Below, piece by piece: positions 22,513 through 63,899 of a stretch of 64,000 nt of DNA. How positions within the stretch are numbered: position 1 is the stretch's first letter; the number at the start of each line of letters is the position of its first letter. The stretch spans positions 1,612,001 to 1,676,000 of the forward strand of contig NW_026262696.1 in the NCBI RefSeq assembly GCF_021869535.1. Direction: 5' to 3'. The position numbers and the translations under genes were made by a program. The stretch is from Mytilus californianus (lineage: Eukaryota). The notes below the pieces were generated by a model that did not search any database, was not told where the DNA came from, and was given only the letters and a program-made list of their open reading frames with translations.

Positions 22513-22577
22513 ACCAGCATTTACTTGGTAGGAACCGGGAGTTTTCTTAATGCCATATTTGGTTCCGTATGCTTTTT
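22513..22577 (-). CDS. Candidate post-collagen exon (E)KAYGTKYGIKKTPGSYQVNAG
   Basis: Acceptor ggatttttcttcAG and perfect donor GTAAGT. The 65-nt exon is open and runs phase 1 to phase 0, which exactly bridges C11 (ends phase 1) and the terminal exon (starts phase 0). Confidence 0.45.
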
Positions 22578-25952: not shown

Positions 25953-26798
25953 CTTTATCTCCTTGTGTCCCTTTATTTCCGGTCATCCCCTTGTCTCCTA
26001 ACGTTCCCTTTTCTCCTGTTGAACCTTTGTCACCATCTGTTCCTTTATCGCCGGTAGATCCTTTCTCTCCAGTCTGTCCTTTGTCGCCCTGAGTTCCCTC
26101 AATTCCTTTGTCACCTTGTGTACCTTTATTTCCTGTCATTCCCTTATCACCTTGCGTTCCCTTTCCTCCTATCATGCCTTTGTCGCCCAGTGTTCCTTTG
26201 GCACCTGTCATTCCTTTGTCTCCCTGGGTTCCTTTCGCTCCAGTCATACCTTTATCTCCTAGTGTTCCTTTTTCACCAATCATTCCCTTGTCTCCCAATG
26301 TTCCTTTTTCTCCAGTCATCCCTTTGTCTCCTAGAGTTCCTTTTTCTCCAGTCATTCCTTTGTCTCCTTGTGTTCCTTTGCCTCCAGACAATCCTTAGTC
26401 TCCTTGCGTTCCTTTCTCTCCAGTAATTCCTTTATCACCTTGCGTTCCTTTATTTCCTTTCATTCCTTTATCTCTTTGTGTACCTTTCTCTCCGGTCATT
26501 CCCTTGTCTCCTTGCGTTCCTTTCATTCCAGTCATTCCTTTGTCTCCTTGAGTCCCCTTTTCGCCAGTCATGCCTTTAACTCCTTTCATTCCCTGCATTC
26601 CTTTCATTCCTTTATAGCCTGCCTCGCCTTTCATTCCCTTTGTACCTTTATCACCTAATGTTCCTTTTTCTCCTGCCATTCCTTTATCGCCTTGTGTACC
26701 CTTTATTCCTGTCATGCCTTTGTCGCCTTGTGTACCTTTATCACCTGTTTTGCCTTTGTCGCCTTGTGTTCCTATCATTCCCTTATCTCCTTGTGTTC
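25953..26798 (-). pseudogene. Collagen exon C11 (846 nt = 94 triplets) with in-frame TAA
   Basis: Acceptor ttttttctaaAG, donor GTAAGT, phase 1-1. AAA>TAA at 26395-26397 and one Gly>Arg at 26473-26475. Confidence 0.85.
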
Positions 26799-27469
26799 CT
26801 TTAGAAAAAAATCACATTTTAGGTATTGTACACATATATTAAATTCAAGAATGCAGTTTACTTATTTTCATAAGTTATTTAGTCTGATAATTACTAAAAA
26901 ATATCCCAAAGATAATACGAAATATTGATTATAATTAAATTTAACTTAAAAGTAGATTATCAGCTCTATATTCCAATAAAAAGTTGAAAGCAACAATTCC
27001 TTTTCTAAAATTTTAATTTATAGTTTATGTGAGAGTAACACGAGTACAGATGTTCGAATAGTTTTTAGTAAAATCGATTTATGCTTTGCTTCTTTAAAAA
27101 AGGGGGGATTTTAAATTTGTCTCAAATGCCACAGATTTGTGCCGTTCGGAAGCAAATACATGCAAAGTTGTGGTCCCTTTTAAGTAAAAAAAATTTAATA
27201 ATTTTATATAATGACTACCAATATACATGGTATATAAGGAATTAAACTAACTGGCGATTTCTTTATTTTTTAGTTACAAAAACTGCGAGACTAAAAGTTC
27301 AGATATATACAATGTATAATACATATAAATGAAATTCACTATTCAATCCTATTTTTCAAGCAGAATGGAGAAATTAAAAGAAAAATATGTTTTAAGATTA
27401 TTTTTTTAATCTTCATTAAAAGTAAATATAATCAATGGGATATTTTGGCGATCTGATTTTTATCGCGAA

Positions 27470-27600
27470 TTCATCGAATATAAACCATTGCCAAATCAAC
27501 AAATATAAACGCATCGCAAAATCAGCAAAAATAATCCTATTGCCAAATCAGCGAAAACAAACCCACCGCCAAATCATCGAAAATAAACCCATCGTAAATC
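27470..27600 (+). repeat. Degenerate 21-22-bp tandem repeat (gccaaatcagcgaaaataaacc), about 6 copies
   Basis: Direct reading; probably the interior of a MITE. Confidence 0.6.
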
Positions 27601-28440
27601 TGCCCGCTTTACAATATGGATTTAGTTGTCCATGTTTGTTCATTTTATAAACATTTCGGTTAGTAATGTATTTCTTGAAAAATCTTGGACAGAGCACAAT
27701 TGAAATGATGTAAATTTTACATCGTAATTTACTCCTTTTACCGAATTACTATTTTTCTAGGTGTATAATGAAAAAGAACAGTGTCACACTTGCGCGCTTT
27801 TTGGTTTTAAAATTGGGAATATATATCATAAATATCTCTTAGAAATTAAATCGGGATAGGAAAATGCTACTACACATTTATATGATAAATAAAAAACGCA
27901 GATTTGAAATGTGTATAATTTTTGGAAACCTGTCTTGGAGTTATGTTATACTGGCGTGCTAAAATGTAAAGCAACAGTGAGAAATATATAAATAGAAATT
28001 TCATATTCAACATTCAAGTAACTTAAATTTTCTGTGTTCAAAAATATATAGTAGTTGCGCAATAACACAATATAGGTCAGATCAGCACCAGTTTCTTGTT
28101 TTTTCAATAGCAATATCTAGTTGACAATGAATTATCAGAAATATCAAAATAATTTTTTTTTAAATATTTGCTAAAATTTCAGTTCACCCGTATAAACCTC
28201 GATGAATCCAGCACTAATGCAAATTCAAATTATGTATAATAATGATAAACATATGTTACTTTGATATCAAAATTTGGCCAGTTTCATAATTGTCTTACAT
28301 CAAAAATTGTATATCAGAACCAACGTAGTTTATATATTTTTTGTTATTTATATACGCAAAACATTACGGGAATATTTAAAATAATTGAAAACAACAAATA
28401 AGTATCTATATATTTCAGCACCTTATCGATTGTTACCTAC

Positions 28441-29130
28441 CCTTTTCGCCTGTCATTCCTGTCCCAGAGGTTCCCTTATCACCATGCGTTCCCTTTTCTC
28501 CTGTCATTCCTTTGTCTCCTTGCGTTCCTTTCAATCCAGTCGTTCCTTTGTCTCCTTGTGTGCCCTTTTCACCTGTCATACCTTTAACTCCTTTCATTCC
28601 TTTATAGCCTGTCTCGCCTTTCATTCCCTTTGCACCTTTATCGCCTACGGTTCCTTTTTGGCCGGTCATTCCTTTGTCTCCTTGTGTACCTTTCTGGCCA
28701 GTCTCTCCTTTCAAACCTTTGTCTCCCTGTGTTCCTTTATCCCCTGGTCCACCTGTTGCACCCTTATCTCCTTCTGTTCCTTTCATTCCTTTGTCCCCTT
28801 CTGTTCCCTTTACACCTGTCATACCCTTATCTCCTTGTGCTCCTTTCTCACCCGTCACACCTTTATCTCCGAATGTTCCTTTTTCACCAGTAATGCCTTT
28901 AACTCCTTTCATTCCTTTGTAGCCTGTCTCGCCTTTCATTCCCTTTGCACCTTTATCGCCTAGTGTTCCTTTTTCACCTGTCATTCCTTTGTCGCCTGAT
29001 GTTCCTTTAGCACCTGTTGGTCCTCTGTTACCTGTAACACCTTTATCGCCTAACGTTCCTTTTTCGCCGGTCATTCCTTTATCGCCCAGAGTGCCTTTTT
29101 CTCCAGTTTCGCCTTTATTGCCCAGGGTAC
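28441..29130 (-). CDS. Collagen exon C10 (690 nt), open, one Gly-X-Gly imperfection
   Basis: ORF 28433-29137. AAG acceptor (weak) and GTAGGT donor, phase 1-1. Length is 3 nt short of 77 triplets, matching GTS-GT-GMT. Confidence 0.8.
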
Positions 29131-29954
29131 CTTTCATTCATTTTAAAGTAGAAAATGAGATCAATGAATATATTAGATATATTAACGTTATATAGTGGAA
29201 ATAGCTTTTATTCTTGCATACAGTGATAGATTTCCACACATGCTAACGAACTCAATGTACATTAGATGTCCAAAATGGTAGTTATTGACAGTGTTTTTCA
29301 CAATCAAAACAATGAAATGCTTCTCGGTCTTAACGAGAAAACGGAACATCTTTAATACAACGTTAAATGGCGTTTTATATGTAGGGCATGTCAATAAATA
29401 TTTTTTTTCAAAGTAGAATCACACTCGATACAACATAAAACTAGAATTAAGACAAATGTCAACACTTGAATATGTGAAGTTTAAGATGTTTTAGATAAAG
29501 AATGTAGATAGTTTTCGACTTTATAAATCATATATTTTATGCAAATTTTAAACCTTAAGGCAACATGATTCTTAATTTGCACTTTTCTATATAAAAAAGC
29601 CGATTGTGGACACACAGTAATGTAGGAGCATGAACTTTTACTTGTATTGTTCGTCTTTAAATATAAATGTGTTACTAACCTTATAATTAATCAAAGTCAA
29701 ACAGTTTCAAAATTATAAGTAACATGTATGTAACTATACTAACATATTGTTTCACATTTAGCAATTGTCATATTTAAAATTTCCTAGATGAGATAAGAAA
29801 AGATCAGATACATATAGCATGCATTTTGAAAATTCATTGGATTATAATGTAAACAAATTGTTATAAAATTTTTTATTCTTGTAACTATATTAAAAAAATG
29901 ATTTTTGATAAGTTCCTTAATACAATGAGTGAAAGATTAGTTATAATATATTAC

Positions 29955-30431
29955 CTTTATCTCCTTGAGTGCCTTTGTTTCCTGTCACTCCTTTATCTCC
30001 TTGTGTTCCTTTTACACCAGTCATACCCTTATCACCTTCGGTTCCTTTATTGCCTGTCGTACCTTTATCTCCTTGTGTTCCTTTGTTTCCCGTCATGCCT
30101 TTGACACCTTTCATTCCTTTATAGCCTTTTGCTCCTTTCTCTCCTGTTACACCTTTATCGCCCTCAGTACCCTTTTGTCCCGTCATTCCTTTATCTCCTG
30201 ATGTTCCTTTATCACCAGTTGTTCCTTTACCGCCTGTCATTCCTTTGTCTCCTTGTGTTCCTTTATCTCCTGTTTCACCTTTATCGCCTTCCTTTCCTTT
30301 CGAACCTTTATCTCCTTGTGTGCCTTTTGACCCGGTCATTCCTTTATCTCCTTGTGTACCCTTTTCACCTGTCATTCCTATATCGCCTAGTGTTCCTTTC
30401 TGGCCAGTCATCCCTTTATCTCCCTGTGGCC
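29955..30431 (-). CDS. Collagen exon C9 (477 nt = 53 triplets), intact
   Basis: Acceptor cacatttAG, donor GTAATA, phase 1-1, unbroken Gly-X-Y. Confidence 0.88.
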
Positions 30432-30823
30432 CTAAATGTGATTGTTTTTGTATTAAGTTAAACAAAATGTAGCTTCCTTTTTAAACGTAAGACATTGTTG
30501 CAATTAACAATTATCAAAGTATTTTTAATTTATCTTATTTTTTTGCTGGTTTTTAAATTGTTTAATGGATGTGTGTAATTAGTTATATGTTTTTTATGTT
30601 AATACTTTTGTTTCTCATCCCAAAGTGAAAAAAAAACCTTCACAAGTTCTTCCTGTTGTTTATAATTATACATTTCTGACTCGAGTGTGCTAACTTAAAG
30701 ATCAATTCCTTTATCAACGTATTTATGATATGGCAATAATATATAATGCAAAGAATACTGAATTTCAAGGACAAAATTAATCAATTTACATATACACATT
30801 ATACAGACAAATACTAGAAATTA

Positions 30824-31556
30824 TCTTACCTCCTATACATTTCTAGGAATATGATTGGTTAAAAGCAACCGCGTGGAGACCTTGTATATTTCATATTAGG
30901 TTTGTAGGCGGGGCTAATTTCAATACACAGTTAGTAGTGGTGTTACGTCCGTTTATAAAAACAAGACGGTGTTAAAGAAAAATCTGAAAGGTTTCAACAG
31001 ACGAAGAAATTGATGATAAACGATTGAAATAAATTCATAATACACATTTAAAGGTAACAAGTTGTTACTGTTGGCATTTGTTTTTGTATAGACAAATGGA
31101 AGTAGGTTCTTAATACTAAGTATTGAAGACTGAATCACTTTGATAGGTCACTAGTCTAAATACCACATGTTAAAATAGTCGGTAAGATAAATTCGTTACA
31201 AAGTGTGCTAATGACCTAATACGATATATATGGGGTCAGTAAATTCCATATATATTTTATTAGGTTACTAGCACACTATGTAACTAATACTAGTAATATG
31301 CCCTGAGCATGCCGAGGAAATTCAAGATGTATTATTGGTTACATAATGTGCTAGTGACCTAATACGATATATATGGGGCCAATAAAATCCATATGGAGTG
31401 AGAGCAAAGCCGTGTTGATTTTTATAAAGGGACGTAACAGCACTACTAACTGTGAAACTAAAATAAGCCCCGCCTACTAACCTAATATGAAATATACAGG
31501 TCTCCACGCGGTTGCTGTTAACCAATCATATTCCTAGAAATGTATAGGAGGTAAGA
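30824..31556. mobile_element. MITE with about 145-bp terminal inverted repeats and a TA target duplication
   Basis: TA|tcttacctcctatacatttctaggaatatg... mirrored by ...catattcctagaaatgtataggaggtaaga|TA. Internal 48-bp direct repeats at about 31202 and 31346. Confidence 0.85.
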
Positions 31557-32012
31557 TAAAATAGTATACATGTGTTCCTTCATCCAGATTTAAAGAGTTT
31601 CACACACTGCACACATAATAATATCACATTCAATTATTGTTTTAAGACCAATTTAAAAAGGATTTATCGTTCGACCTTGAGACCTGACATCTTATTTAAA
31701 AGGACATATAACCTTTTAAAAAAAAGTTGTGACCTAAGTGGGGTAACCTACTGGAGCCCCATTTGCATACAAAGGACGGTAGGTGAAACTTAACATCATC
31801 AAGAAAAGAGGATGACATGTTTGAATGTGATAATACATGCACAAAGATTTTCCGATGAGAAGAATATACACATAGTTACGCACCATATGTATCTTTTAAA
31901 AAAAGTTTTAGTAACATTCAATGTAATGTGAATTGCTAGAGTAATATTCCACATTGTATTCTTAAATCAATTATAGATACAGGTTATGTTTGCGGGAACT
32001 ATAATTCCATAC

Positions 32013-32372
32013 CTTGCATGCCTTTATCGCCTCGTGTTCCTTTTTCTCCCATCATTCCTTTATCTCCCAGTGTTCCTTTATCGCCATCAGTTCCTTTGTC
32101 ACCTTCTGTTCCTTTTGATCCTGCCATTCCTTTTACACCTTTCATTCCCTGCATTCCTTTCATACCTTTATATCCCGTCTCTCCTTTCATTCCTTTGGCT
32201 CCTTTATCGCCTAGTGTTCCTTTTTCTCCAGTCATTCCTTTATCACCTCGAGTTCCCTTGTTTCCTGGCATTCCCTTATCGCCGTTTGTTCCCTTTTCTC
32301 CTGTCATTCCTTTATCTCCCAACGTTCCTTTTTCTCCTTTATTTCCCGTCATTCCTTTATCCCCTTGTGTAC
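32013..32372 (-). CDS. Collagen exon C8 (360 nt = 40 triplets), intact
   Basis: Acceptor atatttAG, donor GTATGG, phase 1-1. Confidence 0.88.
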
Positions 32373-32431
32373 CTAAATATTTGATGTATCATTAGAATTG
32401 CTTATTAGCTATGATAGAAGTTACATAAAAG

Positions 32432-33058
32432 AACAGAGTTCCAATGTCCCCCGCGTTGCACATATTTTATCTATCCAGGGGCAATATCTGAAAAAACAAC
32501 ACTTTTTTTTTGTTGATCTTTAAAACAATTTATAAATAAAAAGCGTGCGCGGTGGGACAAAAAAGATTTTTTTTTATTGTATACTAAATATTTCAAACAG
32601 ACCTTCAAGGGTATTACTTATAGTATACTATAAGTTTAATAAAAAATGTACACGTGAGAGCACTAACGAGGCCATTTTCCATTCGTTTAATATTTCCAAG
32701 GGCATAACTCTTTCAAAAATGTCAATCGGCCACCATTATAGAACTTGTCCGAGATATTGCTGATATTAACCTATAGTACAAGTTTTATAAAAATCTGGCA
32801 AGAATCGTTCCCTTGAGAGTGCTAACACGGCCATTTCCATAGATTTAATATTTCCAAGGGGCATAACTCTTTAAAAAAAAAACCGATCGGCCACCATTAT
32901 AGAACTTGTCCGAGATATTGCTGTTATTAACCTATAGTATAAGTACTATATATTCTGGCAAGATTTGCACCTGTGAGAGCGCTAACAAGACTGGACGGAC
33001 GCACGGACCCCCGGTATTTCCATGTCCCCCGCAATGCGTTACGCGGGGGACAAAAAAG
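32432..33058 (+). mobile_element. HINE/pearl-like element, family 2, in a collagen intron
   Basis: 5-prime tgtcccccgcg, internal units of about 152 bp, GACG microsatellite, 3-prime hairpin tgtcccccgc..gcgggggaca (33023-33052). Confidence 0.8.
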
Positions 33059-33210
33059 CTGTGCTCCAATAAAAAAATTTCGAAATATTAAACAAAATCG
33101 TATAAACTCTCCTGTCACTTAGATATTAGAAAGTTGTCTCAAGCAGTTTATATTTTTAATAAGCAGTCATACATTCACATAATATAAGGTTAACTACTTA
33201 TAATTCTCAC

Positions 33211-34254
33211 CTTTATTACCAGTCTCCCCCTTCTCACCGTCTGTTCCTTTTGTTCCTGTCATTCCTTTGACGCCTTTCAATCCTTGCACGCCTTTCATGC
33301 CTTTATATCCCGTCTCTCCCTTCATTCCCTTTGCTCCTTTGTCTCCTTCTGTTCCTTTTTCTCCGGTCATTCCTTTATCACCTAGCGTTCCTTTTGCTCC
33401 GGTCAATCCTTTGTCACCTTGTGTTCCCTTTCTCCCGGTCATACCCTTGTCACCTTGTGTTCCTTTTTCTCCGACCATACCCTTGTCACCTAATGTTCCC
33501 TTTTGACCTGTCATACCCTTATCACCTGTCGTTCCTTTCTCTCCTGTCATTCCCTCATCTCCTTGCGTTCCTTTTTGACCAGTCATTCCTTTGTCACCTT
33601 CTGTTCCTTTATCTCCTGCCATTCCTTTGGCGCCTTTCATACCTTTATATCCCGTCTCTCCCTTCATTCCTTTGGCTGCTTTATCGCCATTTGTTCCTTT
33701 TTGTCCTATCATTCCTTTATCACCTAGTGTTCCTTTTTCGCCTGTCATGCCTTTGTCCCCTTGTGTTCCTTTTTCACCAGTCATGCCTTTGTCTCCTTGA
33801 GTTCCTGTCATTCCTTTATCACCCTGTGATCCTTTTTCACCGAATTCCCCTTTGTCACCTTGGATACCCTTATTCCCAAGGGTTCCATTTTGTCCCGTCA
33901 TTCCTTTGTCTCCTTGTGTCCCTTTTTCCCCAGTCATTCCTTTGTCTCCCATTGTTCCTTTCTCTCCTGTCATACCTTTATCACCTTGTGTTCCCTTAGT
34001 ACCTGTCATTCCTTTATCCCCTTGTGTTCCTTTTTCACCTGCCATTCCTTTGTCCCCTAGAGTTCCCTTGTTTCCAGTCATTCCTTTATCACCGTCTGTT
34101 CCTTTTTCTCCTGTCATTCCTTTATTCCCTAGTGTACCTTTAGCTCCTACTGGACCCTTGAATCCTGTCATACCCTTATCGCCCTGGGTTCCCTTGTTGC
34201 CTGTCATTCCTTTGTCTCCTGTTGTTCCTTTCATTCCTTTATCCCCTTGCGTGC
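33211..34254 (-). CDS. Collagen exon C7 (1044 nt = 116 triplets), open, one Gly>Ala
   Basis: ORF 33194-34234. Acceptor ttataaattccAG, donor GTGAGA, phase 1-1. Confidence 0.88.
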
Positions 34255-34877
34255 CTGGAATTTATAATTCATATTTCAAAAGATGTTCACTGAAAAATAT
34301 ATATGATTAAATGCGCATATAGAATGCTTGTATTAAATCGTCAACTAGTTGATTAAACATTAAGCAAAATAATAAGACTCCCTATGTATGACTTATACGA
34401 AATATTGAACGAAGAATGAAAATATTAGTCTTATTGTTTTCGTTTTGAAATTCGTCATCAATTTTAACATACCAATAATATTTTATATAGATTCGTTTTA
34501 CTTGAACATTGTATTTAATTTTCCACTTAATTTCATCGCAAGAACGTATAGGAAAATTTGAAAAATATCTAGATAGATATTTGCTGAAATAAGCACTCGT
34601 ATAAACAATATTTAAACTTTATGTTCGTGTAGAAAAAGACAACTAACTTGACATGTACACAAATAATTTAGACTTTAAGATTTTAAGAATCTTGCAACAT
34701 TATTGATGTAAAAATCCTTGACAACGAACCTTGTCCCAAACCGAGATATCAATAGAAACTCTTCAACGAAGATTTCAAAAAATTTCCAATTTGATACTTT
34801 TGCAAGCTATTTTCTGACTCTTTTTAAAAAGTCCCAGACATTCACATAACATTTGATTATCTACACATCAATCTCAC

Positions 34878-35958
34878 CTTTATCACCAGTCGTTCCTTTG
34901 TCACCTTCTGTTCCTGTTGCTCCTGTCATTCCTTTTACCCCCTTTCAATCCTTGCATTCCTTTCATGCCTTAATATCCCGTCTCTCCCTTCATTCCTTTA
35001 GCTCCTTTATCGCCGTGTGTTCCTTTTTCACCGGTCATCCCTTTATCCCCTTGTGTTCCCTTTGTTCCAGTCATTCCTTCGTCTCCTTGTGTTCCCTTAT
35101 TTCCTGTTATTCCTTTGTCACCTTCTGTTCCTTTTTCACCTGTCATTCCCTTGTCTCCCAGTGTTCCTTTCCCACCAGTTATTCCTTTGTCGCCTTGCGT
35201 TCCTTTTTCACCTGTCATTCCTTTGTCTGCTAGTGTTCCTTTCTCACCGGTCATTCCTTTGTCGCCTTGTGTTCCTTTTTCACCTGTGGCTCCTTTATCT
35301 CCAGAAGTTCCCTTATTTCCTGTCATTCCTTTGTCACCATTTGTTCCTTTTGCTCCTGTCATGCCTTTCATTCCTTTGATTCCTTTTTGTCCTGTCATTC
35401 CTTTGATTCCTTTGTCGCCTTGTGTTCCTTCTTGTCCTGTCATTCCTTTGTCTCCTAGTGTGCCTTTTTCTCCTTGTGTTCCTTTTCCGCCCGTCAATTC
35501 CTTGTCGCCCAGCGTTCCTTTGCTTCCTGTCATACCCTTGTCTCCCTGTGTACCGTTAGCTCCAACATTACCAGTGTCACCTTTATCACCATCTGTTCCC
35601 TTCTTTCCTGACATTCCTTTGTCTCCTTGCGTTCCTTTCGATCCTATCATTCCTTTATCTCCTTGCGTTCCTTTCTGTCCAGTCATTCCTTTGTCACCTT
35701 CTGTTCCTTTTGTGCCTGTCATTCCTTTTACACCTTTTATTCCCTGTATTCCTTTCATTTCCTTGTAACCTCTCTCGCCTTTCATTCCTTTGTCGCCTTG
35801 TGTTCCTTTTTGTCCTGTCATTCCTTTATCTCCGTGTGTGCCGTAGTTTCCTGTTAGACCTTTGTTTCCTGTTTCTCCCTTATCTCCCCGAGTTCCTTCT
35901 CCTCCTGTCATTCCCTTGTCACCAGTTGTTCCTTTCATTCCTTTATCTCCTTGTGTTC
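34878..35958 (-). pseudogene. Collagen exon C6 (1081 nt = 120 triplets + 1), most damaged
   Basis: Acceptor gatcatttcAG, donor GTGAGA. AAA>TAA at 34970-34972, +1 frameshift in the homopolymers at 34933-34942, and three Gly substitutions (EMK, ELT, ADK). Confidence 0.85.
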
Positions 35959-36364
35959 CTGAAATGATCAAATGTGGCCTTGTTCATCTAACATGACTGA
36001 TGAATTGCAAAATAAATCAACAAAAATAAAAATAATTAAAAGTTGAATGTGAAAATAACAAAAATTCTGCTTAAATTTACTCTTTTAGCAAATCTCTTTT
36101 AAACCAAAGAAAACTTTGAACCATTCTTTTTTCTCATATAAATGATCTCTTGAATCAAACAATGAAAATGTGAATCATATAGATCATCAATTATTAGATT
36201 GAAACACTTGCCTTGGCACAAAACCTTCCTTTACATAAATATACAGGGGAAACGTACATTGCTGAAACAAAGTGTCTTATGCAATAAAAAAAGGCTCTTT
36301 AATGTAGTACATTTGTACGAACAACTAATTTTCAGGCCTACATAATTAAAACATGTTATGTCTA

Positions 36365-38465
36365 AACAAGAGGCTCTCAAGAGCCTGAATCGCTCAGCTG
36401 TATTTTTTGTTTTGCTTAAATTTTTCATCAATGATTATTTTTGCTTTTAAATATATATTAATGAGTGGCTTAAAATGCCATTTAAATGATCTTTGTATCT
36501 GTTATATTTTCTTCAAAGCAAAAAAATGCATTTTACCCCTATGTTCCATTTTAGCCATAGTGGCTATGTTTATTGACATACAAGGAAATAAAATACTAAA
36601 TTTATACTAGATACTCTGAAACTCATTCAGCCCAAGTTTGGCTGAAATTGATTCAACAGTGTCAAATGATAAGATTTTTTAAAGTAAGCAAACTAGATGA
36701 ACAAATTGTGAAAAATTGTCTTTAATGGACAATAACTCCTTAAGGGGTCAATTGGCAATTTTGGTCATATACAAAATTATTTGAAGATGTTACTTTGCTG
36801 AACATTTTTGCTGTTCACAGTTTATCTTTATCTATAATAATATTCAAGATAATAACCGAAAACTGAAAAATTTCCTTAAAATCATCAATTTAGGGGCAAT
36901 AACCTCAAAATCAGATACCCTATTTTGCTGATAATTTCAGGGCAGGTAGACCTTGACCTAATGAATACTTTAACTTCCTGTCTGATTTGCTCTAAATGCT
37001 TTAGGTTTTGAGATATAAATCAAAAACTGCATTTTACCCTATGTTCTATGTTTAGCCATGTTTTCTGAGGAAACAGAAAATAAAACACAAACTTTATTCT
37101 AGATAACCTAAGAATCATTCAGCTTAAGTTTTGGTTTAATTTGGTTCAGTACAGGGGTTAAAAAAAATTGTTACAGCTCACTAGCCCAGGACTTATTGGT
37201 AGCAGGATTTTACTAGCCCTGTTGAAAGAGCTGCTAGCCCATCAAAACTGACCTGCTAGCCCGAGTATACCTTACAAATTTAGAGTGGGTGTCCCTTGTT
37301 TTGAATGCGGCATTATACACGGTATTTGATAAAATAAATCAAATAAATTTTTGTTTTATTAATTATAACAAGGATCTCTAGACATCTTTTTGGATATCCC
37401 TTGTACTATGTGTTGTTAAATATTGTCGGGCACAGAAAACATGTTCATTGATCTTGTCATGTCAAACCAGTGGTTCAATTCGTATATTTGTTGTTCCCAC
37501 ATACAAAGCAGACTTTTTATCAGCGTTATCAGGAAAATAACGGCAATATTCACAAAACATCATCTCTTGTTTATCATCAGTAACAGTCGACCTTGCCCAT
37601 GGGGAATCTTTCTGTCCATGACACTATAAATGTTTTTTTCCGCTTTTCCTGGTCGTATTTGGCATTTTTTGGGTATAAATTTTCAGCCTCATTACCCCCT
37701 TCATCTACCGTTTTTCGTTCTGAAACTGACAAAGTTCCTATGGTGGCCGTACTAACATGACTAAAATGTTTAGAAATAATTTGTGCATGGTTTCAAGCTC
37801 AAATTAACAGCATATTCGGTTACAAGTTTTAATTGCCTGAAGTGTAAAAGTCTAGTCCCGGGCGTCGGGCTAGTGGATTTTTTAACCCCTGTCAGTAGTT
37901 TCAGAGGAGAAGATTTTTTAAAGTTAGAAAACATGATAAACAAATTGTGTAAAATTGTCCTTAAAGGTTTGTAACTCCTTACGGGGTCAATTGACAGTTT
38001 TGGTCATATAAAACTTATTTGTAGATCTTACATTGCTGAACATTTTTTCTGTTTACAGTTTATCTTTATCTATAATAATATTCAAGATGATAACCGAAAA
38101 CTGCAAAATTTCCTAATTTACCAATTTAGTGACAGCAACCCATGGTGGCCATGTTTTTTGAAGAAACTTAAAAACAAAACACAAACTTTATTCTGTATAC
38201 CCTATACCCTAAGAATTATTCAGCTTTAGTTTGGTTGGAATTGTTTTAGTAGTTTTAGAGGAGAAGATTTTTTAAAGTTAGAAAACATGATTAACACATT
38301 GTGTAAAATTGTCCTTAAAGGGCAATAACTCCTTAAGGGGTCAATTGACAATTTTGGTCATATTAACTTATTTGTAGAACTTACTTTGTTAAACATTTTT
38401 GCTGTTTACAGTTTATCTTTATCTATAATAATATTCAAGATAATAACCAAAAACTGCAAAATTTC
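36365..38465 (+). mobile_element. HINE-like element or satellite array (aacaagaggctctcaagagcctgaatcgctca start; repeated ataactccttaaggggtcaatt..tatctataataatattcaagata units)
   Basis: Three homologous blocks at about 36700-36880, 37900-38110 and 38270-38460, interrupted by a nested MITE. Confidence 0.65.
37152..37891. mobile_element. 740-bp MITE, perfect 14-bp TIR (CAGGGGTTAAAAAA), 6-bp TSD TCAGTA
   Basis: TSD at 37146-37151 and 37892-37897. Subterminal CTAGCCC motifs (4 left, 1-2 right). The empty site can be reconstructed from a neighbouring satellite unit. Confidence 0.85.
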
Positions 38466-38710
38466 AAATGATTTGTTTAAAACGTTCTAAACAATGGAAA
38501 TTCCACCAATGAAATAACGTTATTTTCATTTTGGTGTACGCACATTGAGATTACCCATAGTCCTTTAGATTTTGAAAAAGGCTAATTATTCAAAGTGATA
38601 AACGAACATTAAGTCCACAAATAAGATTTAAATGAACAAGAAAGAATGATAAAAAAAGTCGGAAGTATAATTTTTCACCTAACATAAATACAATTGAAGT
38701 AATACCGTAC

Positions 38711-39835
38711 CGTTTTCTCCAGTCATTCCTTTATCTCCTTCAGTTCCCCTTTCTCCTGTTATTCCTTTGTCTCCTTGATTTCCCATCATTCCTTTATCAC
38801 CTTGTGTTCCTTTTTCTCCTGTCATTCCCTTAATACCTTGTGTGCCTTTCTCTCCTAACATTCCTTTATCGCCTAATGTGCCTTTGTTTCCTGTCATTCC
38901 TTTATCTCCCAGTGTTCCGTGTTCACCTTTGTCTCCCTGTGTACCTTTTTCACCAGTCATTCCTTTATCTCCTTGAGTTCCTTTATTTCCTGTACCACCT
39001 TTATCCCCTAGAGTTCCCTGTCCACCCTTATCACCTTATCTTCCTTTTGATCCTGTCATTCCTTTAACTCCTTTCATACCCTTGTATCCTTGTTCTCCCT
39101 TCATGCCTTTAGTTCCTTTATCCCCTAGTGTACCCTTTTCTCCCAATTCTCCTTTATCGCCAGAAGTTCCTTTAGCACCACGCTCTCCAGGTTTACCCTT
39201 ATCTCCTTCAGTACCCTTTTGTCCTGTCATACCTTTGTCACCTTGTGTTCCCTTTTCGCCGGTCACACCTTTATCACCCTGTGTTCCTTTTTCTCCTGTC
39301 ATTCCCTTATCCCCTAGTGTACCCTTTTCTCCTGTTTCCCCTTTATCGCCAGAAGTTCCTTTAGCACCACCCTCTCCAGGTTTGCCCTTATCTCCTCCAG
39401 TACCATTTTGTCCTTTCACACCTTTGTCACCTTGTGTTCCCTTTTGGCCGGTCAGACCTTTATTACCCTGTGTTCCTTTTTCTCCAGTCATTCCCTTATC
39501 CCCTAATGTTCCCTTTCCGCCTGCCATTCCTTTGTCACCTTGAGTTCCCTTATTTTTTGTCATTCCTTTGTCACCTTGAGTTCCTTTTTCGCCAGTCAAT
39601 CCTTTGTCACCTTCTGTTCCTTTCTGTCCTGTTATTCCTTTATCTCCAAGTGTTCCTTTCGTGCCAGTCATTCCTTTGTCTCCTTGAGTTCCCTTTTCTC
39701 CTGTCATTCCTTTATCACCTAGTGTTCCTCCTTGTCCCGTCATTCCTTTGTCCCCTTGCGTTCCTTTATTTCCTGTCATTCCCTTATCACCATCAGTTCC
39801 TTTTTCCCCTGTGACTCCTTTATGTCCTTGTGTTC
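38711..39835 (-). pseudogene. Collagen exon C5 (1125 nt = 125 triplets) with in-frame TAA
   Basis: Acceptor tcattgctAG, donor GTACGG, phase 1-1. TAA (probably from CAA) at 39036-39038 and one Gly>Lys (GMT-KNK). Confidence 0.85.
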
Positions 39836-39879
39836 CTAGCAATGATAAGTAATTCATGTGTATTAATGGCTAGTTTAAT

Positions 39880-39985
39880 TATATTCATAATCCACGGTGA
39901 CCTATAGTTTTTAATTTCAGTGTCATTTAGTCTCTTGTGGAGAGTTGTCTCATTGGCAATCATACCACATCTTCTTATTTTATAT
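39880..39985 (-). repeat. Family A copy
   Basis: cggtgacctatagtt...gagagttgtctcattggcaatcataccacatctt. Confidence 0.8.
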
Positions 39986-41134
39986 TATATTTCAATATCT
40001 TAATCTGATCGAATTCCCTATCAAAAAGGTATGAAAAAATGACAAGTTTAAAATGATATCTTGAAATGAAGATTACTCTCAATTGTCAAGGATGCAAGAC
40101 AACTTTTTTTTAACAGACGAGAAGCATTGTTTTTACGGGGCCATACAAATTAGGTCAAAACCACTTTATTGTCTTCCAATGATGCAAAACCAAAGCGAAA
40201 ACAGACACGAACAAGTTTGAGCTTTCTAAAAAGCTGTGGACTGCTTCGCTCTATCCTAATTTAAGGTAATATATGTGCATGTGGTTGTTGATTTAGTATT
40301 GGAAATGTGGTATTTTTAGATATTGATTGATATAAAATGGATGTCTTAGACTTGGAATATCAATTTTTGTATATTTAATAAGATGAACTTTTCTGAAATT
40401 TTAAACTGGCTGTTCGGTGTTTAGTTATCAATATGTTTTTGTGGAGTGTGGTTTTCTAGTTCTTTCAGCTGATCATTGACTTGCGATTTTGATTGCTAGT
40501 TCTGTATATAATTTATTTAGATATATATGAATGTTTAGGTATGTTGATTAAGAGTAACATGATTTCGAGTGATGAAGACAATAACAATCAAAATCAAGGA
40601 GTAAACACAGACTTGTACAACCAAATGATATGTTCACTTTACTTGTTGAAAATTAAAACATTTACAAATAGACATCACTCTGGAGGTGTGCCTCTCTGGA
40701 GGTGTGCCTAGATTGGCAGAAGTTATAAAATACAGATAATGCATTTTTGTAAACATTGTATAGGAACATTGTTAAGCAAACAAATCGTGCATATTGCAGA
40801 TTAACAAAGAAAATAAACGTATTAATAATTGATATTTTAATATTGAATTTCAGTCTGCAATATATGCATAATAAAACGAACATGAATTAATGACAGTTGA
40901 TCGGAACTGAAATACACATAGTTTATTTTCCGCATTTGATGTCTTATTCTGAGACGAAAAAAGTCTGTAATTCTTTATCTCATTCAAGCAAATAGCTGTT
41001 GCTGTATCGCAGCCGCATCATAAAGCAACCAATCAGAATCTATACTAGTATGTGATAAGTAATTATTTCAAGATGGCGAGTTTATCGACTGAAACTTATA
41101 GCTCCGCACCGTGATGCGAAGCAAATAGTGTTTT

Positions 41135-41445
41135 TTCAGGATCATACAAATTAAAACAAAAAAACACGTTATTATCTTCCCATGATGCAACACCAAAGCG
41201 AAAATAGACGAGAAGCATTGTTTACAGGATCATACAAACTAAGTCAAAGCTACTTTATTGTCTTCCTATGATGCAACACCAAAGCGAAAACAGACTAGAA
41301 GCATTGTTTTACACGACCATACAAATTATGTCACAACCGCTTTATCATCTTCCCATGATGCAACACCAAAGCGAAAACAGACGAGAAGCATTGTTGTACA
41401 GGACCATACAAATTAGGTCACAGCTACTTTATTGTCTTCAAATCC
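41135..41445 (+). repeat. About 86-bp tandem repeat, 3.5 copies, with an orphan unit at 40112-40205
   Basis: Anchor gatgcaacaccaaagcgaaaa at 41184, 41270 and 41357. Confidence 0.85.
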
Positions 41446-41549
41446 TCTAGAGTTTACTATTATGCAATATTAGTCCTACTTTAATGAATAACAAAAAAAA
41501 ATAAATAAACAAGCATTTCTAACTGCAAAGCTGTTTGAGTACTCCTTAA

Positions 41550-42164
41550 AGGGGCATTAGCTGTCAAATTTATGTTCACCGATTTGACTCAAATTCTCAT
41601 ATCTGATTTATAACATACTAAAACGTATAAAAAATTATCCAAATTACAATACGTCTGAAATAAACAATTAACAATGCATTGACTCGATAAAGTAACCCGA
41701 TATAAACATAAACATAAATATAAATAGATTGCGACCACGTGCAAGTGGATTTTTCTAGGTCTGTTTGATTCCGTATTATAGGTTGAAAAAAATAGGTTAA
41801 TCATCGTTTTTACCTATAATGAATGATCTTTTGTGGATCGAATCAGTCAACGAAATGGTTCACCTTTGTTTCACTTTCAATGTTGACATTCCTTTCCTTT
41901 TAATGGCTAAACACGCTTAATACATTGGTAACCTATCTCGAGGATCTAGCTTAGGGGTTAAATTGAAGGTCACATGAATACAGATTCAATGAGGTCGAAT
42001 TATTCACTTGCAAGTGAATAATTCACCAGCGATGTTTCTTAGCTTATTGTGAACAAAACTGCCCGCTAAAAGCGAATTATTATTTCACTATTTTTACTTT
42101 CATTAATGATTGAACAAAAAAAAATCATATTTTAATTTTTTATATCTCGTGGCTAATGTCCCGT
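41550..42164. mobile_element. MITE with TTAA target duplication and imperfect purine-starting TIRs (Kolobok-type inference)
   Basis: TTAA|aggggcattagc ... gctaatgtcccgt|TTAA. Confidence 0.55.
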
Positions 42165-42581
42165 TTAAAGACGATATAAAACCATGGTGTTGTTTCGACT
42201 TCTTTGGATATTTCTTTTTAAAGAAAAATGGAAAGAATGGGTATGGTATAATAATTCATGACACAAAACCTCTTCAAGAACTTAGCAAATTCTAAAATTA
42301 CGAAAATATGTCCTTTATAATTGTTCTTAATCTAAAAGTCACAGTATGACATTTAAAATGGTTCAAAGGCTAACATCTCCATTCAAGACGTCAACCATCG
42401 GTTTAAACGCAATTCTTTGCAGAATTTTGATAACTCGACATTTATGCATTGAGTATTAGGGTAAATTGATGTTAACAAATTATAGAGTATAAAAAGCAAA
42501 GAAATCTGAACAATACTGTCATAGTTTGTCTGACAATCTCATTGAAAAATACAAATCATCAAATTGTTTCTTAATATGTAC

Positions 42582-43265
42582 CTGTTACTCCTTTATCGCC
42601 TTGTGTTCCTTTCATTCCTTTGTCTCCTGGTGTTCCTTTGTCTCCTGGTGTTCCTTTGTCTCCAGTAGTTCCTTTCATTCCAGTCATGCCCTTGTCTCCC
42701 AGTGTACCTTTATTTCCCTGCATGCCTTTAACTCCTTTCATTCCTTTGAATCCTGTTTCGCCTTTCATTCCCTTGCTACCTTTGTCACCCTGCGTTCCTG
42801 TCATTCCTTTATCTCCTTGAGTACCTTTGTGTCCTGTCTCTCCCTTATTACCTGTCATGCCCTTGTCACCTTCTGTTCCTTTCTCTCCTGCAATTCCCTT
42901 ATCACCTTGTGTTCCTTTCACTCCTGTTATTCCCTTGTCTCCTTGAGTTCCCTTCTCTCCCGTCATTCCTTTATCTCCATGAGTTCCTTTCGCCCCTTTC
43001 ATTCCCTTATTCCCTTGAGTACCCTTTTCACCCACATCGCCTTCAGTTCCCTTAAGACCTGTCATTCCTTTGTCTCCCTGTGTTCCTTTATTTCCAGCCA
43101 TTCCTTTGTCTCCCTGAGTTCCCTTTTGACCAGTTATTCCTTTGTCCCCATCAGTTCCCTTTTCACCAATGTCGCCTTGTGTTCCTTTTGCCCCTTCTCC
43201 ACCAGTTGCACCTTTGTCACCTAGTGTTCCTTTTTTGCCAGTCATACCTTTGTCGCCTTGTGTAC
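42582..43265 (-). CDS. Collagen exon C4 (684 nt = 76 triplets), intact
   Basis: ORF 42571-43245. AAG acceptor, donor GTACAT, phase 1-1, unbroken Gly-X-Y. Confidence 0.85.
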
Positions 43266-43590
43266 CTTTGTGTGAACAATTTAATTATTTTATTTGTTTT
43301 ATAATGAATATACTTTATTCAAGCCATGCCAAAAATAAAATCCTTAGTATTGTTAGTATTGCAAAAAATAGTCCTTAGTATTTCTTAACTAAAATGCATG
43401 TGTTGTCGTGCTAAGCATACCCCCCCCCCCTTTTGTAATTCAACGTATCATAAAACATGAAGTTGGTATGACATTATCTGCTCAAACGTTAAAACTCATA
43501 ACTGGTGAGCTGCTGACAAAATATGAAGTCATTCTGTTCAGTAGTTTCTTAGAAAAGTGTGCCGGATATGTTTTATGTTCATTCGACATA

Positions 43591-43804
43591 CTGTGGATTC
43601 ATTTATTTTCGTGGATACATGTACCAATTTTCGTGGATTGAGGAAAACTTGGACTTTCGTGGATATTTGATTTCGTGGTTTTCCAAAAGTCTGCATATAT
43701 TCATAAAGAAAATTTGTAATTCGTGAACTATTTCAATTTGTGGTTTCCCTGTATCCACGAAAAACACTAAAATTGGTATCCAACGAATATAAATGAATCC
43801 ACAG
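43591..43804. mobile_element. 214-bp MITE with TA TSD and about 38-bp TIR (Tc1/mariner-type)
   Basis: TA|ctgtggattcatttat.. / ..ataaatgaatccacag|TA. The left TIR carries TACATGTA where the right TIR has TA. Confidence 0.85.
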
Positions 43805-44308
43805 TATCAAACTTTTTTTTTTAAATATCTGTAACCAGGAAGTATGTATTTGACAGATCCAAAAAAAATGCTCATAAAGTTCAAGCTGCTGGCCTAATAT
43901 GAAATCATGCTGTTTAGTAGTTTTTGAGAAAATTGTACCGAATTAAATCGTTAGACGAACAAACTCGACAGAGGAACGCACAGGCCAGAAAACATAAGAT
44001 CGCCTACAAAAACCAATATTATTATTTAAACTGATAATCTTATAAACAAGGGATATCAGTGGAGAACCTGTCACAGTTCTAACTTAGTGCTTGGAAATAT
44101 ATTTATGCTTTACTGTTTCATAGGATCGATAGTTTATTTCACTCTCATGTAAAATAGGTGAAAAAATCCCCCGTGCGTAAAGTTTGTAGTGAGCAGCAAC
44201 ACTGGTGTCAAAAAGGGCAAAATTATGGTACTTTGTGCGCAAAAAATTTATAGATTAAATCGCGAAAAAATCTACATTAACAGTATTTAGCTTTTACCAT
44301 GTACGTAC

Positions 44309-44812
44309 CTTTGTCTCCTCCTTCTCCAGGTGTACCTTTGTCACCTAGTGTGCCCTTTGCTCCAGTCATTCCTTTGTCACCTAGTGTCCCTTTTGGTCCG
44401 GTCATTCCTTTGTTTCCTTGTGTTCCCTTTTCTCCAGCCATACCCTTGTCACCTTGTGTTCCTTTTTTTCCGGTCATACCCTTGTCACCCTGTGTACCCT
44501 TTTCTCCAGTCATTCCTTTATCTCCAGTCATTCCTTTATCTCCTAGTGTTCCCTTTTCTCCTGTCATTCCTTTATCTCCGTCTGTCCCTTTTTGTCCTGT
44601 CATTCCTTTGTCTCCTTGTGTTCCTGTTGATCCTGTCATTCCTTTGTCTCCATCAGTTCCTTTGTCACCATCTGTTCCTTTTTCTCCCGCCATTCCTTTG
44701 ACACCTTTCATTCCTTGCATTCCTTTCATACCTTTGTATCCCGTCTCTCCCTTCATTCATTTGGCTCCTTTATCGCCGAGTGTACCTTTTGGTCCAACAA
44801 CTCCTGGCGCTC
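44309..44812 (-). pseudogene. Collagen exon C3 (504 nt = 56 triplets) with Gly GGA>TGA nonsense
   Basis: Acceptor gatttcaacAG, donor GTACGT, phase 1-1. TGA at 44757-44759 inside the conserved GAK-GMK motif. Confidence 0.85.
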
Positions 44813-45034
44813 CTGTTGAAATCATTCAGATAACATGACTTTAAATTCAGACAAAATTATTAAATAACGTATTGAACTAAATGAGCAGAAGGATGCAACA
44901 TTATATACAAAGATACATGTTTAATCTGTTAATATCAAGGCACTAACGATTTCTAGAAATTTTAAGATACTCGGAAAGAAGTTCTTGTTATATCAAAAAA
45001 TAATATCCAGAACAAAATAATTTACTAATAAATG

Positions 45035-45210
45035 GATTATTAGACCGTTGGTTTTCCCGTTTGAATGGTTTTACACTAGTAATTCTGGGGGCCCTTTATA
45101 GCTTACCGTTCGGTGTGAGCCAAGGCTCCGTGTTGAAGACCGTACTGTGACCTATAATGGTTTACTTTTATAAATTTTGACTTGGATGGAGAGTTGTCTC
45201 ATTGGCACTC
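45035..45210 (-). repeat. Family A subfamily copy; sister copy at 51575-51730
   Basis: ggggccctttatagct..gttcggtgtgagccaa.gctccgtgttgaag..gagttgtctcattggcactcataccacatct occurs in both. Confidence 0.8.
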
Positions 45211-46123
45211 ATACCACATCTTCTTATATCTACTTAGTTTTTCTCTCAGTTTACATTAAGATATCGTTTAATGTTAAATTTTCTCAAACATCAATTACTC
45301 TTTCAACCCATCTCGGAATTATACGAAACTTGGACAGAAGCTTTTTATGATCAAACAACAGAGGAATTTCCAGAGGTTATTTGAAAAATAAGGGTTTCTG
45401 TATTTACTGATAAAAGGACCTTTTTCAGTAATTAACATAAAAATAGAGTCTTGGGTTATTTGTTTTAAGACCTATATAACTGTGTCAAACCTTTTCAGAA
45501 TTTTATGACCCTGTAGCAGAAGTTTTTTCTAGGATTAAGAGATATTCTCGGTGATAAACTTGTAAATATTTCTATTTAAATTCTGTTAGTTTTTTATCTA
45601 AAAGATGGACTTAACTTTTTGTAATTAACATGTAGTATATACATTCTGGGATAAGTGTTTTTTTTTTTACATTAATAACTTTATTAAACCTTCATGGGAT
45701 GTTACGAAACTTGGACAGAAGCTTGATCAAGATCAAGAAATACCATCTGAAGAAAATAATAAATGTTTTTTTATTCTGTCCGTAATTTACCAAAAAAGGA
45801 TGGTTTACTCTGGTAGCAGCAATCGCATTTGCAGACACACGTCACACAGGTTTCCACGGAATCCTTTACGAATTGTATAAATCTAACTACACCTTTTGGA
45901 TATACAAAAACCATCAAACGTCTTTTTCTGACTTATCAGAACTAACAAAAAATAGGGTTGAAATATAATGTGAACCTACATGTATGCATAGTAGTCTTCA
46001 TCTATTAATTTTTTATTCATTTTAAATGCAGTTGCATGATCCATTTCAAAACATGCACACTTATTCACCTTAACTCAAACACGAAAAATCAGTTAAGCTG
46101 ACAAACGAAATAAAATCAAGTAC

Positions 46124-46934
46124 CTTTATCTCCATCTGTTCCCTTATTTCCTGTCATTCCCTTATCTCCTTGTGTTCCTTTCATCCCAGTCATCCCTTTG
46201 TCCCCTTGTGTACCTTTTTCACCAGTCATTCCTTTATCTCCAAGTGTTCCCTTTTCACCCATTGCTCCTTTATCCCCGTCAGTTCCTTTATTTCCTGAAA
46301 ACCCTTTATCACCCTGTGTGCCTTTGTATCCTTTATCTCCTTGTGTTCCCTTTTCGCCTGTCCTTCCCTTGTCTCCTTGTGTTCCTTTCTGTCCAGTCAT
46401 TCCTTTATCTCCAAGAGTTCCCTTTTCGCCGGTCATTCCTTTATCTCCTTGTGTACCTTTCCCTCCAGTCATTCCTTTATCTCCCAGTGTCCCTTTCTCT
46501 CCTGTCGAGAGAGTGCCACGCTCTTTGCACGTTAAGAACCCTTGCAACAACTCTTTGAGGGGTCCGTAGGTGACCTGTTGCAAGGCTAAATTTCTGTCCC
46601 TATCCGATATACCCTCATTTCCCGTGGCACTCTAAATTTCTCCGACCACAATCCCTTAATCTATTACAGAACCTACCTATTGTATTTATTGTGAACTTGT
46701 TCTCGTCCTGAATATGCATGAAATATTTGCCACTGGACGTTAAGCAACCAACAATCAATCAATCAATCTCTCCTGTCATTCCTTTATCACCTTGTGTTCC
46801 TGTTTCTCCTTTGTCACCTGCTGTTCCTTTTTCTCCCGCCATTCCTTTGACACCTTTCATACCCTGCATTCCTTTCATACCCTTATATCCTGCTTCTCCC
46901 TGCATTCCTTTAACTCCTTTATCGCCTTGAGTTC
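46124..46934 (-). pseudogene. Collagen exon C2 (540 nt = 60 triplets once the insert and one TSD copy are removed), split by a SINE
   Basis: Acceptor ttgtaaatAG, donor GTACTT. Removing 46507-46777 restores Gly-X-Y. Read-through meets TGA at 46759-46761. Confidence 0.85.
46507..46768 (+). mobile_element. 5-prime-truncated SINE inserted in exon C2, 9-10-bp TSD (c)TCTCCTGTC, (CAAT)n tail
   Basis: TSD at 46498-46506 and 46769-46777. The tail is shared with three other copies in the window. No tRNA head. Confidence 0.9.
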
Positions 46935-47291
46935 CTATTTACAAATATAAATAAGATTATTTAGAAAGTACAATAATAAGACGCTGATAACATTACTCTT
47001 TGATATATATGTGTTTTACGATATATGGTATAAGTAAACATTTGTATACTAGTACATGTATATGGTTCTGTCCATTTCAATTTTTTATGTCAAAGCTTTT
47101 GTCTTATCTTTGTGGATAATTTTAGGTTCGACCGTATGTTCATTCAAACTGTCATATTTAAAAAAAAAATGTGAAATATTTAAACCGAAACTGTGTTTAT
47201 CGAACAGTTATGAAAAATATATAGGCAGTACCAAAAGGACAACCAAATATTAGGGACATATACTAAGGACAAATGTGTGTCCCCTTTTCAC

Positions 47292-47417
47292 CTTTATCTC
47301 CCTGAGTCCCCTTATCTCCCATCATTCCTTTGTCACCTTGAGTTCCCCTTTATCCTATCATTCCCTTGTCTCCTTGAGTTCCTTTAGAACCTGCTGTACC
47401 ATCCCCACCATCATTTC
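47292..47417 (-). pseudogene. Collagen exon C1 (126 nt = 14 triplets) with in-frame TAA
   Basis: GND-GGD-GTA-GSK-GTQ-GDK-GMI-G*R-GTQ... with stop at 47350-47352. AAG acceptor and GTGAAA donor are inferred from phase and multiple-of-9 length. Confidence 0.65.
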
Positions 47418-50743: not shown

Positions 50744-50870
50744 TTTAAATTAAAGAAATTCCCATTTTATTCGTCACCAGCAAAATGCCCAAACATTTGT
50801 AGGGCCAACGATATGAGGATTTATACGAAGATATAAATTGAAATAACAATTAAAAATTATTTCATTTTAC

Positions 50871-50937
50871 CGTTAGTCCATATTCCATGTATACATGTAC
50901 ATGAAAACAGCAGAAAGGCTGCCGACTTCCACTCCAT
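50871..50937 (-). CDS. Candidate first coding exon: signal peptide MEWKSAAFLLFSCTCIHGIWTN(G)
   Basis: Acceptor catttgcctacAG (exon starts 50945), context aaccATGG, hydrophobic core, donor GTAAAA in phase 1 matching all collagen exons. Confidence 0.65.
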
Positions 50938-63713: not shown

Positions 63714-63899
63714 TTATCAATCCGAGATCTGATAATCCGTGATAAAAGATTATCAATCTGAAATAACGGATTATCAATTCGAGGTCACAGATTAGCAATC
63801 TGAGATCACAGATTGTCAATCCAAGACCATGGATTGTCAATCCGAGATCACGGATTACCAATCCGAGATCAAGGATTATCAATCCGAGATCACGGATTT
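63714..63899 (+). repeat. 21-bp minisatellite (tcaatccgagatcacggatta), about 9 copies, each unit a small hairpin
   Basis: atccg..cggat inverted arms within the unit; probably the interior of a MITE. Confidence 0.85.

Follow-up and report, generated by a model that had tools for sequence, protein, structure and literature searches.

The 64,000-nucleotide (nt) window of the Mytilus californianus genome analysed here (assembly GCF_021869535.1, contig NW_026262696.1, forward-strand positions 1,612,001 to 1,676,000; coordinates below are counted from its first letter) raises the question of whether an array of minus-strand exons, encoding a giant and nearly proline-free Gly-X-Y repeat, belongs to a working collagen gene. 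An earlier note made from the sequence had proposed an unusually long secreted collagen built from interchangeable cassette exons. Our analysis leads us to lean towards a more restricted answer, namely that the locus holds a lineage-specific collagen-like gene which was constrained for a long time and has recently been inactivated here, or is represented here by a null haplotype. In its present form the copy in the window has probably ceased to work.

The Gly-X-Y array itself is real and far beyond chance. In a six-frame scan of the window such tracts were confined to the minus strand, between positions 25945 and 47418. The reading of borders and frame on this strand yielded eleven exons, all of phase 1-1 as originally proposed: each is preceded by an AG acceptor, the G of which serves as base 1 of a Gly codon, and closes at a G/GT donor. 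The outermost bases of the array, 47417 (first exon base) and 25953 (last exon base), coincide exactly with the limits given in the earlier note. In the order of transcription the exons measure 126, 540 (prior to the insertion of a short interspersed element, SINE), 504, 684, 1125, 1081, 1044, 360, 477, 690 and 846 nt. Nine of these eleven lengths are exact multiples of 9, the exceptions being, as had been counted before, the 1081-nt exon (+1) and the 690-nt exon (-3). The summed coding sequence of ~7.48 kb corresponds to 826 Gly-X-Y triplets, very close to the first estimate of ~7.5 kb and ~830 triplets, and the longest tract contains 77 triplets. DNA depth in sample X3 is even, at ~10 both in the exons and in the unique introns, and the locus is therefore single-copy.

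Among the 2478 in-frame residues of the tracts, Gly accounts for 34%, Lys for 16.9%, Thr for 14.0%, Asp for 8.0% and Met for 6.5%, with Pro limited to 0.5% (13 residues), i.e. the handful that had been anticipated. The expected dominance of GDK, GMT, GTQ and GEK was likewise observed, these being the commonest of the 826 triplets (178, 92, 85 and 65 occurrences, respectively). Lys occupies half of the Y positions, and Thr is found in 148 Y and 198 X positions. A polymer modelled on the repeat would read (GEKGTQGDKGMT)n. The repeat is accompanied by a Tyr-containing "knot", G(Y/F)KGMKG (as in GETGYKGMKG), which lies within GAKGMKGETGYKGMKG and occurs 13 times, roughly once or twice per exon. 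Over long stretches every third residue is Gly, as in the triplet repeat of the Pfam Collagen family (PF01391), and the scores against this family are 98–203 bits compared with a gathering cut-off of 27.2. Its sequence places the peptide in the collagen repeat superfamily but in no narrower group.

The relationships between the exons speak of old constraint. The exons are 73–90% identical to each other in DNA, and no similarity is shared by the introns between them. In protein-guided alignments, differences between exons amount to 0.45–0.55 at third codon positions versus 0.11–0.22 at positions 1+2; dS (the synonymous substitution rate) exceeds 1, reflecting saturated synonymous sites, and the ratio of nonsynonymous to synonymous rates (dN/dS) is in the range of 0.08–0.21. 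These values show that the duplications are old and that selection held the peptide repeat, with a clear signature of long-term purifying selection; the array was thus once part of a working gene.

Inspection of the individual exons (all on the minus strand, given in transcription order) revealed that only five of the eleven are free of disabling lesions; five others contain in-frame stops, one of these being also frameshifted, and the sixth is split by the SINE. Exon 1 (47292–47417, 126 nt) has an in-frame TAA at 47350–47352. Exon 2 (46124–46934, formerly 540 nt) is divided into 167 and 373 nt by a 262-bp high-copy SINE (46506–46767; DNA depth of the SINE part ~5x10^5 in sample X3) flanked by a 9-bp target duplication ACAGGAGAG. 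The in silico excision of the SINE restores the 540-nt exon, reading ...GDKGMTGEKGTLGD... across the junction. In exon 3 (44309–44812, 504 nt), a TGA at 44757–44759 replaces the GGA of sister exons. Exon 4 (42582–43265, 684 nt) is intact, and exon 5 (38711–39835, 1125 nt) combines a TAA (39036–39038) with one Gly>Lys. Exon 6 (34878–35958, 1081 nt) has a TAA at 34970–34972, three Gly substitutions and, 30 nt past the stop, a +1 frameshift in G5/A4 homopolymer runs (~34932–34943), after which the frame closes. Hence the "+1", previously taken for a mere exception in length, is actually a frameshift; the stops, the SINE and the Gly substitutions had been missed altogether. The frame of exon 7 (33211–34254, 1044 nt) is open, with one Gly>Ala; exons 8 (32013–32372, 360 nt) and 9 (29955–30431, 477 nt) are intact; exon 10 (28441–29130, 690 nt) is open and has one triplet short of a residue (GTS-GT-GMT); and exon 11 (25953–26798, 846 nt) displays a TAA at 26395–26397 and one Gly>Arg. 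Altogether, six isolated Gly codons are substituted (by Arg, Ala, Ala, Glu, Glu and Lys). These are disabling coding lesions of the kind by which a pseudogene or a null allele is recognised. Stops can be created by about 1,257 of the 22,302 single-base changes possible in the array sequence, and given this proportion the five stops and six Gly losses translate into ~0.5–1% neutral change.

Within exon 11, three A>T departures from the consensus of the repeat (AAA>TAA, ATG>TTG and ACT>TCT) fall within 12 nt of each other at 26395–26410 on the minus strand. Their clustering suggests that the stop at 26395–26397 may have arisen in a single mutation event.

An obvious concern is that the gene is in fact intact, the stops, the frameshift and the SINE being errors of sequencing or assembly. 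Such an explanation would be in line with the location of the frameshift in G5/A4 homopolymers and with the existence of a SINE-free allele in other samples. On the other hand, the stops are base substitutions rather than homopolymer slips, the SINE is bordered by a clean 9-bp target-site duplication, and five stop errors per 7.5 kb would far exceed the error rates of polished assemblies. Moreover, the stop of exon 1 (47350–47352) is also present in a contig of the independent DNA sample X3, which stems from another study than the best-matching run and where none of the 7 contig differences listed over 46825–47500 falls at this site. As this stop is reproduced in X3, it is no assembly error, and we regard errors as a very improbable source of the observed lesions.

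Three contig sets (X3, X9 and X11) and a raw RNA run (X21) were compared with the window over the region 42500–47500. This comparison revealed that the locus is structurally polymorphic between individuals. Upstream of 46507, the allele carried by X3, X9 and X11 is strongly different from that of the window; contigs break near the stop of exon 3; X3 carries a Gly>Val in exon 1; an in-frame 18-nt deletion at 44503 (exon 3) is found in both X3 and X11; and an X9 contig contains additional 36 nt, corresponding to one 12-residue unit, at 43134–43169 (exon 4). Among the differences listed between the window and other individuals, ~8 exonic changes are nonsynonymous and 4 are synonymous, an excess that would be unlikely under the long-term ratio (roughly p = 0.03, from a small list). 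This excess hints that present-day differences may be closer to neutrality than the long-term dN/dS.

Which exons would have completed the gene? A candidate first coding exon is located at 50870–50936 on the minus strand. It encodes MEWKSAAFLLFSCTCIHGIWTN plus one base and ends at a phase 1 donor (G/GTAAAA). Its start codon is in a good context, its phase fits the collagen exons, and its 22 residues are signal-like, which makes a role as the signal-peptide exon plausible. Downstream of the array, a 65-nt penultimate exon (22513–22577, minus strand), (G)AA...GGT, encoding EKAYGTKYGIKKTPGSYQVNAG, leads from phase 1 to phase 0. Together with its AG and GTAAGT borders it is kept in the M. edulis, M. 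trossulus and M. galloprovincialis loci, it is open solely in the phase-1 frame, and of the seven differences that separate it from M. edulis, four are synonymous and fall at third codon positions. The terminal coding exon (17170–17376, minus strand) reads TVKNYAGIQNQIYNAIKKITAK...RYRGKK to a stop codon that is overlapped by AATAAA. The first 22 residues of this exon are invariant bar one position across four species. They are followed by a diverged Tyr/Lys/Arg-rich stretch, containing only two His, in which the frame is kept through three indels. AlphaFold predicts a single helix at residues 3–23 (pLDDT, the predicted local distance difference test, 75–86) and disorder beyond. The 65-nt exon exits in phase 0, exactly as the terminal exon requires, and the phase logic therefore ties the array to the conserved tail.

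The 3' end of the gene is recognisable in other mussels. Alignment of the window to the neighbour-gene loci of M. edulis and M. trossulus is at ~80–86%, for coding and non-coding DNA alike, which places the mytilid of the window outside the M. edulis complex. In these two species as well as in M. galloprovincialis a syntenic minus-strand gene ends 6–7 kb beyond the neighbour gene. Its uncharacterised products have annotated lengths of 7031 aa in M. edulis (RefSeq), 2975 aa in M. trossulus (RefSeq) and 1751 aa in the 2020 annotation of M. galloprovincialis. In three loci (L003, L005 and L006) the end of the annotated gene matches the stop of the terminal exon to the base. The 10-kb flanks retrieved for the five loci L003–L007 end before the array.

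The terminal exons and the single-copy locus also bear on a more radical doubt, namely that the array is no gene at all but a coding-like tandem repeat or satellite merely resembling Gly-X-Y. The sequence is indeed highly repetitive and of low complexity, and two large searches returned no close protein relative. A satellite would not, however, be expected to show exact AG/GT borders on twelve blocks, pre-insertion lengths in multiples of 9, a third-position divergence three times that of positions 1+2, single-copy depth, or downstream exons that are conserved and compatible in phase. This possibility is effectively refuted by the borders, the codon-position divergence and the downstream exons.

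The conserved 22-residue helix, as modelled, is the sole candidate for a trimer nucleation site. No COLFI, NC1, C1q, CTLD, SRCR, VWA or other globular exon was found in the window, and beyond the array the minus strand has no open reading frame (ORF) for a globular domain. A tblastn search of the window with the non-collagen parts of 120 matches (including CTLD, C1q and SRCR proteins) gave only a low-complexity match at 63.6 kb. This segment (63640–63897, plus strand) was rejected as a recognition-domain exon, since it is a tandem DYQSEIT repeat with a spurious weak match to the coiled-coil of unrelated collagen proteins.

With respect to transcription, no run recorded as RNA in the sequence index contains the collagen exons. 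In the RNA run X21, which is from the same organism and of which ~10 million reads were sampled, depth was zero on 1.85 kb of exons (five exons tested), the intact exon 42582–43265 included, and the reads mapped only to transposon copies in the region compared. This sets an upper bound on expression in that sample of less than ~0.1 fragments per kilobase per million. Neither spliced reads nor exon-exon contigs were detected in X3, X9, X11 or X21 over 42500–47500. The small libraries X9 and X11 (~5 Mb of contigs) cover the exons and not the unique introns. That they represent RNA was ruled out by contigs extending 10–110 nt into introns without joints and by a DNA-type joint common with X3; restriction-site-associated DNA (RAD) was ruled out by contig ends that have no common site. 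Overall, these libraries look like exon-enriched DNA rather than mRNA.

Several observations weigh against a recent inactivation. The presence of a stop in another individual was checked for one of the five (that of exon 1), and in the X3, X9 and X11 contigs the collagen coding sequence runs on past 46507, free of the SINE. X21 is a single RNA run of unrecorded tissue, ~6% of its reads were sampled, and a gland-specific gene would escape it. If X9 and X11 were capture libraries obtained with cDNA baits, they would hint at transcription somewhere. The 7031-, 2975- and 1751-aa models have no Pfam match on record and did not surface in the protein searches, which may reflect length limits or composition correction, or may mean that they are non-collagenous proteins. 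Finally, the damaged exons all keep canonical splice sites and, as all exons are of phase 1-1, transcripts skipping the damaged ones would stay in frame.

The last point leads to an alternative scenario in which the gene is still functional. The damaged "pseudo-exons" would be skipped frame-neutrally, the protein would consist of the intact exons and the conserved tail, and the array would evolve by a birth-and-death of cassettes. The symmetry of all exons and the restoration of phase 0 by the 65-nt exon are consistent with such a scenario, as are the tail ORF, which runs without interruption to the stop shared with the other species, the variation of the orthologous models from 1751 to 7031 aa, and the distribution of Gly substitutions, one of the six being in intact and five in damaged exons (one-sided p ~0.1). 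Against it speak the lack of any spliced contig or read in the region 42500–47500 and the absence of X21 reads even on the intact exon 42582–43265. The damaged exons, which combine canonical splice sites with just one or two lesions each, are also unlike exons that have long been skipped. We therefore consider continued function through skipping rather unlikely. The tuning of length by inclusion or skipping of whole exons, as originally envisaged, would be permitted by the phase symmetry, which is its sole basis.

Returning to the reading that we favour, a recently inactivated gene or null haplotype, the ancestral gene would have started with the signal-peptide exon, followed by the eleven symmetric phase-1 exons with ~826 Pro-poor, Lys/Thr/Met/Asp-rich triplets, punctuated ~13 times by the Tyr-containing GETGYKGMKG knot. 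The 65-nt exon would have reset the phase, and the terminal exon would have added the short conserved helix and the basic Tyr/Lys/Arg-rich tail. The product may have been secreted, trimerised via the conserved helix and played a structural role in the past. This would be a single-copy, mussel-specific gene that was long under strong purifying selection, to which uncharacterised models correspond in position in three further species of Mytilus, and for which constraint would have been lost recently in the copy under study, with ~0.5–1% neutral change and a probable loss of function since. The analysis thus supports a genuine collagen-type gene with very long exons and almost no proline, a plausible signal exon and old purifying selection, whereas the protein of 830 triplets envisaged in the earlier note is blocked here by the SINE, the frameshift and the five nonsense codons. 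Taken by itself, the locus offers a clear example of a repetitive gene that was constrained for a long time and is now at an early stage of decay, its haplotypes varying in length and in presence or absence, and it cautions that exon geometry alone does not demonstrate a working gene.

A broader and rather doubtful possibility is that Mytilus has a living family of giant Pro/hydroxyproline-free collagens (the models of 1,751–7,031 aa), equipped with Tyr-Lys knots and a Tyr/Lys-rich tail resembling those of foot proteins. It would constitute a structural protein, extracellular or byssal, that has so far gone unrecognised and in which symmetric exons come and go by birth, death and skipping. Such a family may have escaped proteomics, as trypsin would yield peptides of 3–6 residues. 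Were it alive in any Mytilus, it would provide an animal collagen devoid of proline and hydroxyproline over thousands of residues, in which a Pro-free helix is paired with the Tyr/Lys chemistry typical of mussel adhesives. This would have a bearing on triple-helix stabilisation and on recombinant collagen materials produced without prolyl hydroxylase.

How does the predicted product compare with known collagens? A search with the 355-aa exon against 5.8 billion clustered and 1.84 billion representative proteins retrieved generic collagens only, at no more than 53% identity, and the GTQGDKGMTG unit was present in none of the matches. Such blanks in the protein searches are weak evidence, as true orthologues may have been concealed by length limits or by the composition correction of HMMER. 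For the ORF beginning after the stop labelled C4, no exact match was on record. Neither the repeat nor the knot or tail motifs turned up anything relevant in the literature library searched, and keywords gave no matching protein. With the 123-aa exon as a query, one related exon was identified (P0271, 61% identity) on the genomic-type Logan contigs L001 and L002. In L001 (positions 1–994; Logan SRR19987520) it is a phase-1 collagen exon, GVQGDKGVKGDAGDKG..., bordered by AG and GTAAGA, with GDK at about every second triplet and 72–80% identity to the exons of the window.

The array resembles non-fibrillar PF01391 proteins in its long unbroken Gly-X-Y and in exons that split a Gly codon after base 1. 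Animal collagens have roughly 20% imino acids and exons of 45–162 nt, as opposed to 0.5% Pro and exons of 126–1125 nt in the window gene. It also departs, with its 826 triplets, from fibrillar collagens, which are characterised by ~338 triplets, a COLFI C-propeptide and a 54-bp exon pattern. With the byssal preCols of Mytilus (preCol-D, -P and -NG) it has in common the genus, the idea of a secreted structural collagen and termini able to cross-link. In the preCols a Pro/Hyp-rich helix of ~175 triplets is flanked by silk-, elastin- or Gly-rich segments, and the ends are rich in His. The window gene shows none of these hallmarks (13 Pro in 2478 residues; ends formed by a signal-like exon and a Tyr/Lys/Arg-rich tail), and the original impression that it is unlike preCols was correct.

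The best named matches were M. californianus "pulmonary surfactant protein D-like" and "collectin-12-like" proteins and vertebrate MARCO, at 43–50% identity. The Mytilus collectin-like proteins and MARCO also possess a Pro-poor, GDK/GEK-rich helix with an alpha-helical segment beside it. They differ in being only 400–520 aa long, in being anchored by a transmembrane segment and in ending with a C-type lectin or SRCR domain, for which the window has no exon. More generally, defence collagens (collectins, the C1q family and MARCO) carry a C-terminal recognition domain that the window gene lacks. The similarity to collectin-like proteins and MARCO is compositional rather than architectural.

Hydroxyproline-free, Pro-poor and charge-rich helices are likewise known from Scl1/2, phage tail-fibre proteins (GDKGDTG repeats) and giant-virus collagens; for example, the phage proteins P0233 and P0118 contain 1.6–1.8% Pro and many GDKG units. 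The genes for these bacterial, phage and viral proteins are intron-less and encode globular trimerising domains, in contrast to the spliceosomal introns and mussel synteny of the window gene, and the GTQGDKGMTGEK unit was found in none of the bacterial/phage collagen-like matches. The collagens of annelid and vent-worm cuticle and of sawfly silk have been described, in part in PMC3790195, as using either very long helices whose Y positions carry glycosylated Thr or small collagen proteins that make up an extracorporeal silk. Like the window gene (Thr in 148 Y and 198 X positions), they depart from the Pro/Hyp rule. Unlike the window copy, which is broken, unobserved as RNA and without demonstrated sequence kinship to them, they are expressed and characterised.

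As for the surroundings of the gene, the plus strand at 121–5355 contains an ORF of 1744 codons that converges on the collagen gene. It encodes a Gln/Asn/His/Thr-rich low-complexity protein with repeats of RTRTENRQPERQVQQLNT and MPINQPGQ, which has no Pfam match and is 66% identical to the uncharacterised XP_071140290.1 (M. edulis) and LOC134718738 (M. trossulus). Very high-copy repeats at 45005–45338, 46508–46841 and 43502–43835, one of which is the SINE in the collagen exon, reach an X3 DNA depth of 10^4–10^6 and are transcribed in X21. Remains of a long terminal repeat (LTR) retrotransposon are located at 59458–62710 on the minus strand, with a gag-like ORF (Retrotrans_gag, Ty3 capsid) adjoined by ORFs without family matches. 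Short ORFs at 52893–54093 on the plus strand resemble the remnant of a further mobile element. Scanning the window with Rfam and for tRNA genes gave no matches. The sole Gly-X-Y-like run outside the collagen gene is a small Gly/Tyr tract, GGYGSYGGYGIYGGYGGA, at 55156–55209 on the plus strand.

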